DNA of 64,000 nt, taken from Hyaloraphidium curvatum SAG 235-1 (taxonomy: Eukaryota > Fungi > Monoblepharomycota). The stretch lies in NCBI GenBank assembly GCA_025558095.1, contig JAIVFI010000018.1:1-64000 (forward strand), given 5' to 3'. The notes under the pieces were generated by a model. It searched no databases, was not told the DNA's origin, and was given only the letters and a program-made list of their open reading frames with translations. Both the position numbers and the translations under genes were made by a program. The first letter of the stretch is position 1. Every line of letters begins with the position of its first letter. Below are positions 766 to 10,654 of the stretch, piece after piece.

Positions 766-2321
766 ATGGATCCCGCCGCGATTCCCGCCGGCGACGGCCT
801 GGCCACGCTCGGCGCGGCCGACTTCCTCGCCGTCTTCCCGCGCCCTCCGGCGCCCGACGCCCGAGTGCCCCGCGGCCTCCTTTCGCCTACGACGGACCCC
901 GCACTGCCGGCGCGTGAGGAGCGTCCCCTGACCCCCGAGTCAATGGTCGCATCTTTGAAGAACTTCCCACTCCAGCGCGCCCAGCTGGCCCTCCAGTTCG
1001 CCGTGCTCAAGCTCACCCGCGGCTACAAGTTGGCCTGGCTACACCAGTTTACACACACCGCTACGCTTGCCGCGGCGTTCGCCCTTGTCTTCCCGTTCAA
1101 CGACGGCACTTTCGGAACGCGGCACCTCGCGGTCGGGGCCGCAGCGTACTGGATCAACCTCTTTGGGTACACCTTGATCCATTTTCTCTCGGGAAGCTGG
1201 CGCCCCTCTGCCGACGGAACCGGCAATCCGCTGGACGGGCAGCTGGCTGCGGACCTCGTCAGATGGGCACAGTTGGTCGACACCGCAGGGGTTCCGGGCA
1301 CCGACAGGAAGCTGGAAGGCGGATCGGAGCCTTCTTTGCTCCTTGTGCACGACCCCGAGGACCCCTTGTGCCCATGTCCCAGGAAGGAGTGCGCGGGCGG
1401 TCTCCCCGAACGAAATGCCGCGCTCGCGGTTTTAACCAAGGTCTTCGCCATCCCCAGCTCCCTTTTATCCTGGAGCGTGCTTGGATTATGGACGGTTTGC
1501 GTAACTTTTGCTTCGCGTACCTGGGCCACGGGATGGGCGGCCTTCCTCGTCGTCATCGCGTTGCTGTGCCACGTTCTGTACGCGAGCATCACGATCGCCA
1601 TCTCAGTGGGCACATACGTGCCCCACGACTTCGACATCCAGAACCGGCTGCGGCGGCGCGTCATGACCATCGCGCTTTCGGACCTGGTGAAGAGGCTCGA
1701 GGGACCTTGGCAGCCGGGCGACGCAGCCGCAGCCCCTCCGCCAGCCGTGGAACCCTACACTTGGCTACATTCGTGGCTCGTTTCGGATTGGCAGCTGCAC
1801 CGGGTCTCCAGCGATGGGATCCGGAGGGTATTCGCCTTTGGTGTGCTGCTCGAGGTAGCTACGATCATGATCAGCGTGGTGCGTGAAGGCCGCAGCGTTC
1901 CACGAAGATCCCGCCCGCTGATTCCTTGCAGCTCGGCGCTTCCTGCGTCCCCGCATGGGCCATCTCCACCATGGCCGTCATCGCGTACTGCTTCCTCTCG
2001 AACCTCTACGCCGTCGCGGTGCAGAATGCCCACATCGACGGCACCGCTGCGCTCTACCTCGCGGCTGCGGACCGCATCTCTCTCCTCCTCCTACGCCCCG
2101 CCCCCGCGGGCACCGACAGGGATCTCGTCGCGCACCACGCCGTCGTCTTGCGAACGTACGCGGACCCGACGCGCTACAGGGCCAGATTCCTCGGCTTCGT
2201 CGTCACCTTCGGCGCCATCCGGACGCTGTTGCTCGCCGCGTTCACGGTCGCGGTCGGGCTGGTGGGACTGCTGCGTGGAGGAGGTGTCACCGTGACGCTG
2301 CAGAGCGTGTGCCCAGGGTGA
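766..2321 (+). CDS. Predicted 7-TM membrane protein, paralog 1 (candidate 7TMIC/GRL-like receptor channel)
   Basis: ATG 766; intron 1879-1931 (GTGCGT...CTGAT...CAG, 53 nt) joins ORF 706..2295 to ORF 1926..2321; seven hydrophobic segments; two close paralogs downstream. The gene model is secure, the function is inferred. Confidence 0.85.
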
Positions 2322-2592
2322 GGTGGGACGGACGGCCAAGAAGACGCGGGGGTCATGCGCAAGTAGATTCGTGCAATAGATCTATTTGCTGTGTTGAGCC
2401 ATCAAGATCGAGTTGCGCACAAAAGCCAATGCGGCTCTCTTCATCTCTTCGTGGGCGGGGCGGGTGGCGGGACAGCTCGTGAGCTGAGTCCGACTGTCCT
2501 GCACCCCGCCTGACGGCGCCGCAGTCGCCCTCGACACGCTTTCAAACAACCTCTAGAACAAATCGATCTATTCGTCGACCGCCCGGACCGCC

Positions 2593-4145
2593 ATGGAGCC
2601 CACGATCCCCGCCGGCGACGGCCTCGCGACGCTGGGCCCGGCCGACTTCCTCGCCGTCTTCCCGCGCCCCCCGGCGCCCGACCCCCGCGTGCCCCGCGGG
2701 CTCCTTCCTCCCACCGCGGACCCCGCCTTGCCTGCGCGTTCGGAGCGACCCCTGACTCCCGAGTAGATGCTGGCCTCGCTCGAAAGGTTCCCTCTCCAGC
2801 GCGCCCAGCTGGCCCTCCAGTTCATGGTGCTGAAGCTCACCGGCGGGTACAAACGCCCTTGGTTGCACCACTTGTCCTTTTCGGCGTCCCTCGCCGCGGC
2901 CTTTGCGCTCATCTTCCCGTTCAACGACGGCACGTTCGGGACGCGGCACCTCGCGGTCGGCGCCGCGGCGTTCTGGCTCAACGTTTTCGGATACACGCTC
3001 AATCATTTTCTGTCTGGAAGCTGGCGTCCGGCGGCCGACGAAGCCAGCAATCCCCTGGACGGCCACTTCGCCGCGGACCTCGTCAGATGGGCACAGCTGG
3101 TCGACGGTTCCGGAGCGACCGAAGCCGTGCGGAAGCTGGAGAACGGAACGGAAACCTCTCTGCTTCTTGTGCACGACCCAGAGGACCCGATGTGCCCCCG
3201 TCCCAGGAGGGAGTGCGCGGGCAGCGTCCCGGAGCGCAACGCCGCCTTCGCGTTCTTCTTCAAGGTCGTCGCCCTCTCCGGTCCCCTCCTATCCTGGACC
3301 GTCCTCGGCCTGTGGACGATCTACGTGACGTTCGCTCCTCGCACCTGGACCACGGGCTGGGCGGCCTTCCTCGTCGTTCTCGCCTTTCTGACCTCCCTGC
3401 TCTACTGTCCCGTGGTCACTTCCATCTCCACGGGCACGTACGTGCCAGGCGATTTCGACATCCAGAACCGGCTGCGGTGGCGCACCGTGTCCGTCGCGCT
3501 CTCCTATCTGGTGAGGCGGCTCGAGGCTCCCTGGAACCTCGGAGGCACGTCGACGGCGGCTCAGCCGGCCCCCGAGCCCTATACCTGGCTCCACTCATGG
3601 CTCGTGTCGGACTGGCGTATGTACCGCACCGTCGGCGACGGCATCCGGAGGACGTTCGCAATCGGCCTGATCATCGAGGCGGCGACAGTGGCGCTCAGCG
3701 TGGTGCGTGGTTCGCCTCCGCTCCCCCCGGAACCCGTTTCACGCTCCCTCCGCAGCTGGGCGCGTCCTGCGTTCCCGCATGGGCCATATCCAGCCTCGCC
3801 GTCATCGCGTACTTCCTTCTGTCCAACCTCTACGACGTCGCGGTGCAGAATGCCCACATTGACGGCATCGCGGCGCTCTACCTCGCGGCCGCGGACCGCA
3901 TCTCCCTCCTCCTCATCCGGCCGGCGCCCCCGGGTGCTGACAGGGAGCTCGTTGCGTACCACGCTTCGGTCCTGCGGACATACGCGGACCCGACGCGCTA
4001 CCGCGCGCGGTTCCTCGGCTTCGTCGTCACCTTCGGGGCCATTCGGACTCTGCTGCTGGCCGCGTTCACCGTCGCGGTCGGGCTGGTCGGGCTGCTGCGG
4101 GGCGGGGGGGTGACGGTGACGCTGCAGAGCGTGTGCCCGGGGTGA
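2593..4145 (+). pseudogene. 7-TM paralog 2 with in-frame TAG (pseudogene, or N-truncated form starting at ATG 2767)
   Basis: ATG 2593 MEPTIPAGDGLATLG matches the paralogs. TAG at 2764-2766 sits where paralogs have Ser (TCA/TCG) and is immediately followed by ATG. Intron 3703-3755; stop TGA ends at 4145. Confidence 0.75.
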
Positions 4146-5084
4146 GACACCGGGGCCGGCTCCAGCTCGGGACAGGCAGCATGCGCGGGGATCCGGAGCC
4201 GGGGGTGCCCGATTGGGACCATCCCGGGATATCCATACATGTGCTTTTGCGCGGAGCTTGCTTGCTTCATTCTCTTTGGGTGCGAAGCGCGGTAAACCCC
4301 GACTTGTCGGGCATCGTGTGAATCGGCTGCGCTCTTCGCTTCGACTGTCAGCTGCCACAAGGAGGGCAACGGGCCAGGTCGGGCGGGGTGCGGCACGGGA
4401 CCCGCCCGCAGTGCGGCCAGGGAGTCCGCAGGCCCAGGCCCGGCACGGACGAACAGTCCTTCCGCGGCCGGCCCTCACCCCGAGCGTCCCGAACCGCCGT
4501 CCGCGCATGCGGCGCCGCCGGAGCCCCGCCGGGCGGATCTTTGCGCGGCCCTGAGGCGGGCCCGCTCGGCGTATCGTCGCGCCGTTGCACCCGCGGGATG
4601 CCGAGGGGGGCATCGGGATGTCCGCTTCGCCGCCCGAGCCGCTTGAGGGGCCGAATGTGGCCGGCGAACCGGGTTGCCTTCCTACAACGTCCTGCTTCCG
4701 CATACCACGCTACCGGCCTGATTCGTGGCTCTGATTTTCAGATTAAGCAAGATCTTCCGGTGGCTCACGGCCGGAGGAGGAGCGGGAAGCTCTTGTGGAG
4801 ATTTCAGGGGATCGGCTAGGCGGCGTCCCAAACGCAATGCCACCACTCTGCTCTCCTTTCCCTCGGCGACAATCCGCCCTCGGGCGGGCAGCGATACCAG
4901 TGGCCGATTTCGTTCCGTTCTGGGCCGGTGACTCGCCCTCGATCGGGTGGCCGACGCGCTCGATCCAATTCCCGGGTCCGAGGCGGCGATTCGGAGGGCG
5001 GGGTCTGGGCCCCGTCGGCCGGCCTGAAGAGGCAGAGCGGGACGCAAACATCCGAGCGCAAAACTCCACCGACAGCGACCCGCG

Positions 5085-5822
5085 ATGGGAGTCGAGCGCC
5101 CGCGCACCGCGCCGATGCCGCCGCCGCGCCTCGCGTGGCCGCCGCCGCGCTCCGAGCCGCTCCGCGCCGAGAGGGAGAACAGCGCCGCCGGGCCCCCCCG
5201 CGCCGCCGACCCCACCGGCCTGCGCACGCCGCCGCCCACGCCGACGCCCGAGGGCGCGTGCTGGGGCTGCCTGTCGGGGGCGTGCTGCGGCTGCGACGAC
5301 GCAGGCTGGGAGACCGCGAGCGCCGGGACCTCGACGACTTCGGCGTCCTCGGCCGCAGGCGACTCCTCGGCATCGGAGGTTTCGGAATCGACAAACAGGA
5401 CTGGCTTCCGGCACATCGGGGCGTCGAGCCTGCGCAGCGTCGCCAGCACAGCGAGCACAAAGAGCGTGCGGTTCGCCGACGCCGTGGAGGTCTTCTCCGA
5501 CGACTGCGAGGACGCTGGCGCCTCGGGGGACCTTGAGGACGACGAGGACGACGACCGGCCCGCCACTGCTGGCGCCGAGCAGCCCCGCTGGACCCAACCG
5601 GACCTCGGCGTGCCGCGGCCCGACGCCGTCAACGCATGGGCGGCGCACCTCGGCGCCCTCCTTGCCGGCCCGGAGCATACGCTTCCCGAGGGCGGGGCGT
5701 CGCAGCTGCGGGCGGCATGGCCGGCGTTGCTGCACGGCCAGTCAGCGGAGCTTATTGACTTTGGGGTCAAGCCGGCGGAGGGTGCGGGGAGACTGCCGGA
5801 CCTGAGGGCCTTTTGGCGGTGA
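5085..5822 (+). CDS. Hypothetical low-complexity protein containing a KSVRF (RVxF-like) motif
   Basis: 245-aa ORF with coding-like codon use, Ser-rich and acidic tracts; start could be ATG 5085 or 5115. Confidence 0.5.
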   Translation: MGVERPRTAPMPPPRLAWPPPRSEPLRAERENSAAGPPRAADPTGLRTPPPTPTPEGACWGCLSGACCGCDDAGWETASAGTSTTSASSAAGDSSASEVSESTNRTGFRHIGASSLRSVASTASTKSVRFADAVEVFSDDCEDAGASGDLEDDEDDDRPATAGAEQPRWTQPDLGVPRPDAVNAWAAHLGALLAGPEHTLPEGGASQLRAAWPALLHGQSAELIDFGVKPAEGAGRLPDLRAFWR

Positions 5823-6329
5823 TTGGCTATGGACGGATCGTGCCGGTGCCTTGGCCCCGTCCGATTGACGAACTGTACATAGTGCTAGAGATGAGAGGTA
5901 CCCGTTCGGTTAGCCGTTACTTCCAGTGCCGATCATGTGCTTCGCCGCGAGTCAGAGCGCAACCACAATGTTCCCGGTTTGGCCTGTGCCCTTCTCTGAA
6001 GCGAGTACGTCACAAAGGAGCTCCCAAAGTCTAGTAGACGCTTCGCATTCACGAATTTGTCACTGGAGCTTTCAATGTCCGTCGGAGCCGAAGCGAGGCT
6101 TCCTCCTGTCACGATTCCAATGTAGCGTTCCTTCGGCTTTGCTCTTTACGTGGTGTTGTGCAAATCAGGGCTTATGTGTGGCATGGTATCCTCGCGAGCA
6201 AGAAAGGGCTGAGCGGCACTCGGCGTGCCCACCTGTGTTCCCCGCAACCACTGACCTGCCCGGCCCAGCCTCCGCGTCTGAAGAGAAAGAGCTGCTATCG
6301 GACTTTGTCTTTCAACGTCCCGAAACGCA

Positions 6330-7890
6330 ATGGACCACGCGATTCCCGCCGGCGACGGCCTCGCGACGCTCGGCCCGGCCGACTTCCTCGCCGTCTTCCC
6401 GCGCCCCCCGGCGCCCGACGCCCGCCTGCCCCGCGGCCTCCTTCCGCCCACGGCGGACCCCGCGCTACCGGCGCGTGAGGAGCGACCCTTGACGCCCGAG
6501 TCGATGCTCGCCGCGCTGGGGAAGTTCCCGCTCCAGCGGGCCCAGCTTGCGCTGCAGTTCGACGTGCTCAAGCTCACAGGCGGCTACAAGCTGCCGTGGC
6601 TCCATCATTTCGTCTTCTGTACGGCCAACGTCGCGGTGTTCTGCCTCATTTTTCCTTTCAACGACGGCACGTTCGGGTCGCGGAACCTCGCGACTGGGGC
6701 CGCGGCAGTCTTCTTCAACGCCTTTTCATACACTGTGGTCCATTTTCTGTCTGGCAGCTGGCGGCCGGCCGGCGACAAGGCCAACAATCCTCTGGACGGT
6801 CACTCGGCCGCGGACCTCGTCCGATGGGCGCAGCTGGTCGATGCTGCTGGCGGAGCCACCGAAGTCGAGCGGAAGCTGGAGACTGGACCAGAATCTTCTC
6901 TTCTTCTGGCTCACCATCCCGAGGACCCTCTGTGCCCTTGCTCCAAGAAAGAGTGTGTAGGTGTCATCCCGGAAACCAACGCCATGTTGGCTTTTGTAAC
7001 CAAGCTGGTGGTCTCTATCCTTGGCCCTCTTGTGTCCTGGAGCGTTCTGGGACCGTGGACGATCTACATCACGTTTGCTTCGCGCACTTGGTCGACGCCC
7101 TGGGCAGCTTTTCTCGCCGTCGCTGCTTTGCTCCTGCATCTGCTCTACTGTATCACGCTCGCTTCCCTCTCCACGGGCACATATGTACCCTACGACTTCG
7201 AGGTCCAAAATCGGCTGCGGCGGCGCACCATGTCCATCGCGTTATCGGATTTGGTGAATCGGCACGAGGCAAATTGGAAGGGGGGCGAGTCCGCTTCAAC
7301 GCCCCCACCTGCCGGCGAACCCTACACTTGGCTCCATTCATGGCTCGTTTCGGATTGGCAAATTCACCGTATCATCAGCGACGGCATCCGGAGAGTTTGG
7401 ACCTTTGGTGTGCTGATCCAAGTCGGGACAATCATCATCAGTGTGGTGGGTACGCCGTCGGCGCTTCCAGCGGAGATGGTCTTACACCCCAGCATCGCAG
7501 ATCGGTGCCTCCTGCGTTCCCGCATGGATCATTTCCGCCATGATTCTCATCACGTTCGGCTTCCTCTCCAGCCTGTATGCGGTCGCTGTGCAGAACCACC
7601 ACATCGACGGCACCGCGGCGCTCTACCTCGCGGCCGCGGACCGCATCTCCCTCCTCGTGCTGCGTCCCGCCCCGGCGGGCACCGACAGGGAGCTCGTCGC
7701 GCACCACGCAACAGTCTTGCGTACCTATGCCGACCCGACGCGCTACCGGGCCCGGTTCCTCGGGTTCGTAGTCACCTTCGGGGCCATCCGGACGCTTCTG
7801 CTCGCGGTGTTCACCGTCGCTGTGGGATTGGTCGGGCTGCTGCGGGGAGGAGGTGTCACGGTGACGCTGCAGAGCGTGTGCCCGGGGTGA
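6330..7890 (+). CDS. Predicted 7-TM membrane protein, paralog 3
   Basis: ATG 6330; intron 7446-7500 at the same position as in paralogs 1 and 2; C-terminus ...TVTLQSVCPG identical. Confidence 0.85.
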
Positions 7891-8279: not shown

Positions 8280-10187
8280 TCACAGCCTCGCCGCGTCCCC
8301 CTTCCACTCGTCCTTCTCCCTCTTCCCCACGAACCTGAACCCCCGACCCTCAGGCACCACGTCCTCGACCTCCTCCAGCGGCAGGAACTCGGGCACCTTG
8401 TCGAACCCGAACGGGCGCGAGGAGAGGCGGTACCGCACGGGCGTCTCGGAGAGCTGCAGCGCGGGGCCGACGAAGGAGACGGTGTGGCCGGGGGGGAGCC
8501 AGGGGCAGTCCTTGACGGAGAACATGAACTCGGGCTTGTAGGCGTCGGGGAAGCCGGCGCGGAAGTGCCTGTGGGAAGAGGCAGGTTGCACACTGTCAGT
8601 GACCGCAATCACAGACGCAACAGCGTTCCACCCACGTGTTCTGGAACAGCGCAAAGTAGGCGAAGCACCCCCCGCCGAACGCCCTCTCCGGGTCCAGGTC
8701 CGACGGCTCGGGCTGGTACGCCTCCCAGCACTTTTCCACCGTCGCCGCGTCGTGCAGCCCCAGCCTCTGCATCATCATCCCCACCTGCAGCAGGCTCGTC
8801 CTCACCCTGTACGACCCCCCCTCCCTCGCCCTCCGACGCAGCGCCTCGATCACGCCCATGGCGAGCGAGTGCCCCGTGGAGATGTCGAGCACGTTGATGG
8901 GCACGGGCGCGGGCCGGTCGTGCTGCGGGCCGTCGGTGTACCGGTGGTGCTGACCCTGGACGGCCCCGATGCCGGCGAGGAAGTGCGCGAGGTGCTCGTA
9001 GCCCGCGGCCGAGGCGAGGGGCCCGGAGAAGCCGAAGGCGTTGGCCTCGGCGTAGACGACGCCGCGGGGGCGGCCGGCGACGAGGGAGAGGACGTCGTCG
9101 TAGCCGACGCCGAGCTTTTCGGGGACGCCGAGCGCGTTGCTGTGCCGGGCAATGGTGAGGTTGGCTGTCGGATCGCCCTGCCGCGAACAACCCACTTGGA
9201 CAGGAACACGTCGCAGTCGGCGACCATCTTCCTGAACCTCGCCATGTCGTTCGGGTTCTTGAAGTCCACGTGGATCGACCTCTTCCCCGCGTTGGTGTCC
9301 AGCGCAAGCCCGTCATCGATGAAGGGCGACGTCACCCTGATCACCGTCGCTCCCAGCGCGGCCAGCAGGCACCCCCCGCGCGGCCCGAGCAGCACGCGCG
9401 TGAGCTCGAGCACCTTCACTCCGTCGAGAATGCCGGCGGCCCGGGGCTCCCCGATGCGGGTCCACGGCACGGGCGCCCACCCCTCGCGGCGCTCGATCCC
9501 GACGGTGGGCCACGTGGCCGCGAGCTTCCCGTGCTCCGAGGCGGCAAAGTCCTCGGGCCGCTGGCCTACGATGCACGCCGTGGCGTTCTTGGCGATCATG
9601 TTGCGCTCGAGCTCGGCGCTGTCCCACTCGGCGATCCGGGCCGAGACGCGCTCGGCGTACTCCTTCCTGCCTTCGGGGTAGTCCAGCTTGGGCGCGAGCT
9701 CCTTGATCTCCTCGGGGGAGAAGCCAAACGCATCCAGCAACCGCTCGGGACCGTCGAATGGGCGAAGGTAGATCAGGATGTAGCGGCCATCCCGGCAGCG
9801 GAAGCTCGAGTTCATGACGGCGCGGTGCCACCTGTACGGGTCCTCCCCGCCCAGGTGTGCGGCAACGAAGCCGATCGACTCCAGCGCGCCCATGTCGTCG
9901 ACGGTGAACGAGAAGTGCGACGTCAGGCTGGAGGCCGCGTGCGCGACGTCGACGGCCAGCCGCTGCGGCTTCCCGAGCCGCTCCCGCGAGATGAGGCTGC
10001 ACAGCGCGCCGACGGCGGTGTTTATCCCGGCGATCAGCTCCGCGGGCTTGAACGGCGTCGGCACGAAGGGCGCCGCCGGCGCGGTGATGTCCGCCGCGGC
10101 CACGTCGGCCCGCGCGTCGGCGAGCTCGGCGGGCGACAGCAGCTGGGTCAGGTAGCGCAGGGAAACGTCGCGGACAGCGGCCTCCAT
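8280..10187 (-). CDS. CoA-transferase family III (CaiB/BaiF-like, tandem-domain type)
   Basis: LDGVKVLELTRVLLGP...LAALGATVIRV...NAGKRSIHVDFK motif; introns 9140-9195 and 8569-8635 restore the frame. Confidence 0.9.
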
Positions 10188-10654
10188 TTCGGCGGGAGGG
10201 TGGGGGAAGGGCCGCGGGGGACAGTCGTCGGTCCTCTGCGCCGAGGATGTTGCCACCGCCGGCCGCTTGACTTGCCCCCTCCGGTGAAAACGCGGCGAAC
10301 TTTGCCAAAGGCCACACAATCCCCTACAGGGAGAGCAATCCGATCTGTGGCACCTAGTATCTGCCACTGACGAAGGCTGTATTGCAACGAATCCGGACAC
10401 ATTGGCTAGGGCCGCACATTCGAACGCTTGTACCGCCACGCAACCATCACAAAGCAAGCCTAGTCAACCAAGTGCCCCATCTCCTTGAGCGGCGATTTCT
10501 TAGAAACTGCTCGGCTTCTCGTTTGCCTGTCTGTGTAACTGTCCGAGACGGATTCCCTCTCTTCCGTGCGTCCCTGCCGTCCCGGCGACGCCGTCTGTCT
10601 CCCATAAACATCTCCCATCGTCGTCGGCAACACACACACCCTCACCCCGCAAAA

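Follow-up and report, generated by a model that had tools for sequence, protein, structure and literature searches.

A large family of seven-helix membrane proteins with a predicted insect chemoreceptor-like fold in the fungus Hyaloraphidium curvatum

The DNA analysed here (hereafter the window) is a stretch of 64,000 nucleotides (nt), positions 1 to 64,000 of contig JAIVFI010000018.1, from Hyaloraphidium curvatum, a fungus assigned to Monoblepharomycota. It possesses, at 766-7890 on the plus strand, three tandem genes encoding membrane proteins with seven transmembrane segments (TM1-TM7). The genes belong to a family of about 380-470 members in the 32 Mb genome, which are clustered and mostly intronless. 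Structure models indicate that the fold of this family of ~400 members is that of the 7TMIC superfamily, which includes insect odorant and gustatory receptors (Or and Gr), animal and protist GRLs, plant DUF3537 and PHTF. An original prediction, made from the DNA letters alone, had proposed such an array of chemoreceptor-like channels. The best overall explanation, which we consider reasonably probable, is that the family members act as ligand-gated sensor channels.

The three paralogs share a common gene organization, with a long exon 1, a phase-0 GT..AG intron of 53-55 nt and an exon 2 of 387 nt. The intron is placed at the identical codon in copies 1-3, four residues upstream of an invariant cysteine. 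Exon 1 of copy 1, used as a protein query, retrieved three H. curvatum proteins annotated in NCBI as 'hypothetical protein' (P0001-P0003). P0001 is copy 1, with a model that begins at the internal Met60, P0002 is copy 3, of 501 amino acids (aa), and P0003, on a different contig, is the fourth of these close paralogs. The exon junctions of P0001 and P0002 are identical to those read from the DNA of copies 1 and 3. These NCBI models were taken as the full-length proteins, and copy 2 was analysed exon by exon. The DNA repeat families gave a tandem spacing of 1824 and ~3740 nt between the direct copies. DNA reading, NCBI models and repeat families all bear out the proposal of three tandem plus-strand paralogs with a common intron position.

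Hydropathy averaged over the family and the helices of two AlphaFold2 models agree on seven membrane segments, the number first read from the DNA. The models are those of P0002 (predicted local distance difference test, pLDDT, 88.8; predicted TM-score, pTM, 0.87; 41-sequence alignment) and of P0136, which is 25% identical to P0002 (pLDDT 90.5, pTM 0.90; 106-sequence alignment). In P0002, residues 1-88 are hydrophilic and proline-rich, with an amphipathic helix at 67-82 ahead of TM1. They are followed by TM1 (89-110), TM2 (117-141), TM3 (213-240), TM4 (257-280), TM5 (355-375), TM6 (380-402) and TM7b (465-488). TM4-6 are long helices of 45-60 residues reaching into the cytoplasm, at 257-280 plus 287-317, 331-375 and 380-425 in P0002 and at 230-290, 311-352 and 359-411 in P0136. 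TM7 is split: the hydrophilic TM7a (435-448) and the hydrophobic TM7b are separated by a conserved 16-residue linker (RARFLGF). The outer loops have ~12, 16 and 4 aa and the outer tail 13 aa. The inner connections have ~70 (TM2-3), ~75 (TM4-5) and ~60 aa (TM6-7), the latter two being helical; a long TM4-5 loop, a very short TM5-6 loop and a helical TM6-7 loop had also been noticed from the DNA. Among 133 members, lysine and arginine make up 11.6% of the flanks on the N-terminal side versus 3.0% on the C-terminal side. By the positive-inside rule this supports an N-in/C-out topology and contradicts N-out, the arrangement named beforehand as speaking against the prediction. A four-copy complex prediction of residues 285-501, made without an alignment, gave an uncertain fold and does not bear on tetramer formation either way.

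The models were compared with known structures in three libraries (Foldseek against PDB, exhaustive VIA-align and ESM Atlas). In the Foldseek search of PDB, the top 12 matches of P0002 were all insect Gr/Or, and insect Gr/Or formed 11 of the top 13 matches of P0136, with Foldseek probabilities up to 1.0. Among the best eight rows of ESM Atlas, five were annotated as 7tm_6, 7tm_7 or DUF3537 and three were unannotated animal clusters. TM-scores were 0.55/0.62 for DUF3537, 0.50/0.61 for 7tm_6 and 0.52/0.62 for nematode GUR-4, and two 7tm_7 clusters were also present; the unannotated rows included cnidarian (0.57/0.69) and arthropod clusters. Six of these eight rows had TM-scores of 0.50-0.57 by query (0.37-0.57 overall), and the next row falls to 0.31. 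For both models and across all three libraries, the sole alignments of more than 300 residues were with Or, Gr and Orco, the Or/Gr alignments beginning at residues 52-67. No G-protein-coupled receptor (GPCR), rhodopsin, PAQR or transporter obtained a comparable score in the two exhaustive structure searches, so the contrary outcome foreseen by the original prediction, a fold of GPCRs, transporters or another family, did not occur. Five of the six structural hallmarks that define 7TMICs (Himmel et al. 2023, bioRxiv 2023.08.30.555482) were found in the family, namely Or/Gr-like packing of seven helices, N-in orientation, short outer loops, long TM4-6 and a split TM7. Because all three libraries place insect Or/Gr/Orco, DUF3537 and other 7TMIC clusters first among full-length matches, the 7TMIC interpretation is upheld, and the three genes very likely have the 7TMIC fold, as judged from predicted models. 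Sequence comparison gave no link that would establish homology to 7TMICs beyond a shared fold.

Conservation is distributed very unequally along the protein. Among the four close copies, the region from TM7b to the C-terminus showed a non-synonymous divergence (dN) of 0-0.04 at a synonymous divergence (dS) of 0.35-0.87, while dN in TM1-TM5 was 0.13-0.66. The dN/dS ratio was ~0-0.08 in TM7b and stayed well below 1 throughout the protein, also in the comparisons with copy 2. Since dS is 0.35-0.87 where dN is near zero, the 3' end is under purifying selection at the protein level; gene conversion as a cause of its invariance is ruled out by the same dS values. Across the family, TM7b is the most conserved membrane helix with an entropy of 1.69 bits, against 3.0-3.2 bits in TM1-4, the most variable part, and six residues are invariant over 150 proteins. 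In copy 3, TM7b is encoded at 7777-7848 (residues 465-488) and is a putative pore helix, with R469, T477 and R487 conserved in the family. The earlier impression of a nearly invariant TM7 behind a divergent TM1-6 is in accordance with these region-wise ratios.

To estimate the family size, the 31.9 Mb H. curvatum assembly was searched in six frames with P0002 as query, and 86 of 715 first-look candidates were scored. The 92 matches listed correspond to at least 80 full-length loci of 29-37% identity, mostly with single open frames. An exhaustive HMMER search with a 41-member profile against 1.84 billion representatives (50% identity) yielded 467 matches at E<=1e-3, of which 420 reached E<=1e-10 and 299 reached E<=1e-30. 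All ten representatives sampled from 150 listed were singleton H. curvatum proteins. A DNA pattern for D-x2-C-P-C-x4-C occurred at 257 genome sites compared with 4 for the reversed control, and as 60-67% of known members carry the exact motif, these sites scale to ~380-430 loci. Neighbouring motif sites are frequent: within the first 100 listed, 57% have another site no more than 20 kb away, versus a random expectation of 28% (about twofold), so tandem duplication like that in the window is typical of the family. With ~400 paralogs and all sampled representatives from H. curvatum, the proposal of a lineage-specific, diversifying family is strongly supported.

In a FastTree phylogeny the window copies form a tight clade; the group of 14 members in which it lies also holds the C22 gene. 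The intron position of the window copies is shared by three or more of the more distant paralogs (C22, C7 and C32). P0003, which has 64% identity to copy 3, adjoins a more distant member, P0094, at G000:C14:661092-664574 (loci L004, L008 and L056). P0094 has its intron elsewhere, at about residues 274-291 at the end of TM4, which shows intron gain or loss within the family. Two further members lie 4 kb apart on C10 of the same genome (808992-809024 on the plus strand and 813173-813205 on the minus strand) and have identical 33-nt motifs, which suggests a very recent inverted duplication.

Two groups of residues are retained almost throughout the family. The first is present in the first intracellular loop (IL1), which connects TM2 and TM3 and covers ~70 aa (residues 142-212). 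Here H195, D199, C202, C204 and C209 are invariant or nearly so in ~150 proteins; in copy 3 this H-x3-D-x2-C-P-C-x4-C motif is encoded by codons 195-209 at 6912-6956. With an N-in topology the His/Cys3 cluster would be cytoplasmic. The cluster, with the pattern H-x6-C-x-C-x4-C (His/Cys3 plus Asp), is probably a zinc site. The second group is a cysteine pair on the outer face. In copy 3, the invariant Cys377 (7513-7515) is situated in the 4-residue TM5-TM6 outer loop and Cys499 (7879-7881) in the outer C-terminal tail within the motif QSVCPG. The two co-occur in 138 of the 140 proteins covering both positions. Both are in or beside the sole two 3-residue strands of the model, 377-379 and 492-494, and a Cys377-Cys499 disulfide is likely on the predicted structure.

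By analogy with the solved Or/Gr channels, the subunits would assemble as tetramers through a cytoplasmic 'anchor' bundle of TM4-7a, and a central cation pore would be lined by TM7b. The variable TM1-6 bundle of each paralog may form a different ligand pocket, so that the repertoire would sense many chemicals, environmental or metabolic, through ligand-gated channels. The IL1 cluster would bind zinc, and the outer disulfide may latch the C-terminal tail, just past TM7b, to the TM5-6 loop. The separate parts of this explanation differ in strength. That the family members are ion channels is favoured slightly by the analogy, whereas their chemosensory role is plausible but somewhat short of an even prospect. 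The most specific form, in which the unicellular H. curvatum independently evolved ~400 ligand-gated 7TMIC sensor channels whose IL1 carries a zinc (or redox) module and whose C-terminus is latched by a disulfide, is put forward tentatively.

Several observations weigh against this explanation. At the sequence level, Pfam 7tm_6 (PF02949), 7tm_7 (PF08395), Trehalose_recp and DUF3537 (PF12056) gave no match at E<=10 in scans that took in the window exons, three distant paralogs and all 41 alignment members and that returned noise alone. A family-profile search of the PDB sequences similarly had 0 matches at E<=10. Within the H. curvatum genome, PF08395 and PF12056 also found nothing, but as the control genomes gave no match either, this result carries no weight. 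The TM7 motif TYhhhhhQF is absent, a caveat that the original prediction had rightly raised, and TM7b reads FGAIRTLLLAVFTVAVGLVGLLRG. In the structure comparison, the Foldseek E-values are weak (>=7e-3) with TM-scores of 0.3-0.46, and the alignments behind both models consist of paralogs from a single genome. Two elements of the proteins have no counterpart in solved Or/Gr structures, the ~70-aa IL1 with its His/Cys3 cluster and the 16-residue non-helical TM7a-7b linker, the linker of the solved structures being shorter. H. curvatum is non-motile and is not known to have a flagellated stage, so chemotaxis cannot be the use of the family.

Part of this evidence would also fit proteins of 7TMIC fold with a role other than chemoreception. 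Such proteins may belong with the PHTF-like (Class-B) members found in internal membranes, or may be channels or scaffolds regulated from the cytoplasmic side, with the His/Cys3 loop responding for instance to metal or to redox state, and their expansion could serve another end such as stress signalling or the recognition of self and non-self. The PHTF-like Class-B 7TMICs are set apart by their long first intracellular loop, an invariant and presumably cytoplasmic His/Cys cluster suggests intracellular regulation, PHTF has no known chemosensory function, and the host is non-motile. Against this, the PHTF domain of Pfam had no match at E<=10 in the scans of the window exons and the 41 alignment members, and IL1 has ~70 aa compared with more than 300 aa in PHTF. 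PHTFs are also single-copy and conserved, whereas the H. curvatum family is expanded and variable in TM1-4, which is the pattern of ligand-diversified receptors. A non-chemoreceptor role is held to be rather unlikely.

A convergent seven-helix bundle is less probable still. Under this possibility the genes would form an unrelated orphan family of transporters, receptors or structural proteins, and the likeness to Or/Gr may be exaggerated by the predictor. It accords with the failure to find a sequence link to any 7TMIC family. It also accords with a protein-language-model atlas in which unannotated ciliate membrane proteins and TMEM39 were nearest and DUF3537 took rank 23 with a score of 0.90, a low recognition that serves as a lead only. 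Word-indexed searches with exon 1, the family profile and the C-terminal region returned 3-4 H. curvatum proteins each and are uninformative on other taxa. What argues for a genuine 7TMIC fold is that the long alignments are limited to Or/Gr/Orco with no comparable GPCR, rhodopsin, PAQR or transporter, that a split TM7, TM4-6 of 45-60 residues, N-in orientation and a conserved TM7b occur together, and that three libraries agree for two models of 25% identity. Finally, hundreds of dispersed, mostly intronless copies and in-frame stops in copy 2 and a few other loci might suggest that the copies travel with a mobile or selfish element or are for the most part pseudogenes in decay, leaving the array without cellular function, but this is very improbable and a mobile-element origin was rejected, because paralogs of only 25-36% identity keep full-length frames open (82 of the 92 listed matches are stop-free), dN/dS is well below 1 everywhere including copy 2, the flanks of the three copies have no similarity to each other and no terminal repeats, and the six invariant residues persist in 150 proteins.

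If the 7TMIC sensor-channel explanation is true, this would be the first massive expansion of chemoreceptor channels outside animals and by far the largest such repertoire there. The ~400 genes represent ~2% of the 32 Mb genome and are about as many as in the largest insect odorant-receptor repertoires; large 7TMIC repertoires would then not be an animal invention. The zinc/redox module of IL1 and the latched extracellular C-terminus would be innovations new to the superfamily, and the His/Cys3 loop and the Cys377-Cys499 pair are new candidate regulatory or structural elements. A further question is which signals a planktonic fungus without flagella would detect with such a repertoire. Hundreds of natural, mostly intronless variants are offered for structure-function work on this channel class. 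As the members are all annotated as 'hypothetical protein' without a Pfam family, a new family model can be built directly.

Within the array, exon 1 of copy 1 (766-1878, plus strand as for all three copies) comprises 371 codons encoding the N-terminal region and TM1-TM5. Its intron (1879-1931) has 53 nt, reads GTGCGT...CAG in phase 0 and gives the P0001 junction ...IMISV|LGASC.... Exon 2 (1932-2321) encodes the cysteine of the third extracellular loop (EL3), TM6, TM7a, TM7b and the C-terminal cysteine, with the stop at 2319-2321. Copy 3 is composed of an exon 1 of 372 codons (6330-7445), which is identical to residues 1-372 of the NCBI model P0002, a 55-nt intron GTGGGT...CAG (7446-7500) and an exon 2 (7501-7890) encoding residues 373-501 plus stop. 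Copy 2 has an exon 1 of 370 codons (2593-3702), a 53-nt intron GTGCGT...CAG (3703-3755) and an exon 2 of 129 codons plus stop (3756-4145). The three-copy array of the original prediction holds, but an in-frame TAG in exon 1 of copy 2 (2764-2766) had been overlooked. This codon encodes serine (TCG/TCA) in copies 1 and 3, and the conserved Met59 codon comes next. Outside the TAG, copy 2 is under purifying selection like its sister copies, so either the stop is recent or a downstream start is in use. In the first case copy 2 would be a young pseudogene, in the second a gene with a shortened N-terminus. The N-terminal 60 residues (766-942 in copy 1) contain a family-wide motif with the consensus AEWLALxP...DPA...R...PLT, in which P24 is 80% conserved. 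This motif, which may act as TM0, in trafficking or in docking, is missing from the NCBI model P0001, and the stop of copy 2 would remove it.

The 2.2-kb spacer between copies 2 and 3 (4150-6330) is 68-75% GC and contains long overlapping open reading frames (ORFs) on both strands, for which Pfam gave no match. One plus-strand ORF (5085-5822) encodes 245 acidic, serine-rich aa and contains KSVRFADAVEVF, which may resemble a PP1-docking RVxF motif. Downstream of the array, a gene of CoA-transferase family III (PF02515) is situated on the minus strand at 8596-10457. It extends over two overlapping frames (E 3.5e-23 and 8.4e-17), and its halves are presumably separated by an intron or a frame change.

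Among the closest known systems are the insect Or, Orco and Gr proteins (PF02949 and PF08395; for example MhOR5 7LIC, AaegOR10 8V00, Orco 6C70, BmGr9 8VC1 and Gr43a 8JM9). They share with the H. curvatum family seven N-in TM segments, long TM4-6, a split TM7 and short outer loops, and in both, conservation peaks in TM7b and variability in TM1-4. Expansion in large tandem arrays is also common to both. The H. curvatum family differs in having no detectable sequence similarity to them, no TYhhhhhQF, a short TM3-4 outer loop and an invariant outer cysteine pair. The host is a fungus, and its genes mostly lack introns or contain a single one just ahead of the invariant cysteine of the TM5-6 loop, in contrast to the 3' intron of animals. 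PHTF-like Class-B 7TMICs combine the core fold with an enlarged first intracellular loop and are recorded in Chytridiomycota and Blastocladiomycota (PMC9998090; bioRxiv 2023.08.30.555482). The H. curvatum family resembles them in this arrangement, with an IL1 of ~70 aa against more than 300 aa in PHTF. However, PHTFs are conserved, occur in 1-2 copies and have an N-terminus of ~100 aa, while the family has ~400 copies and is fast-evolving.

With the GRLs of unicellular organisms and plant DUF3537 (PF12056), the family shares seven TM segments, N-in orientation, a length of 350-500 aa and inner loops larger than the outer ones. Most of the TM7 motif is missing as in the fungal GRLs SpunGRL1 and SpalGRL1, and a DUF3537 cluster matched the H. 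curvatum model in fold (TM 0.55/0.62). Outside animals, 7TMIC families are small (Benton et al. 2020, PMC7746228): each of two Spizellomyces species has a single GRL, protists have at most 6 genes and plants have 4-12. A later screen described members in Chytridiomycota and Blastocladiomycota and no expansion (Himmel et al. 2023, bioRxiv 2023.08.30.555482). In the literature, no paper linking Hyaloraphidium with GRLs or 7TMICs was found, though members may sit in the supplementary lists of the 2023 screen. Unlike GRL and DUF3537 genes, which number 1-12 per genome and were found by similarity to GRL sequences, the H. curvatum genes lack such similarity and are about two orders of magnitude more numerous. 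By this comparison, the H. curvatum family is rated as a new form of the known 7TMIC superfamily, greatly expanded and with added structural elements.

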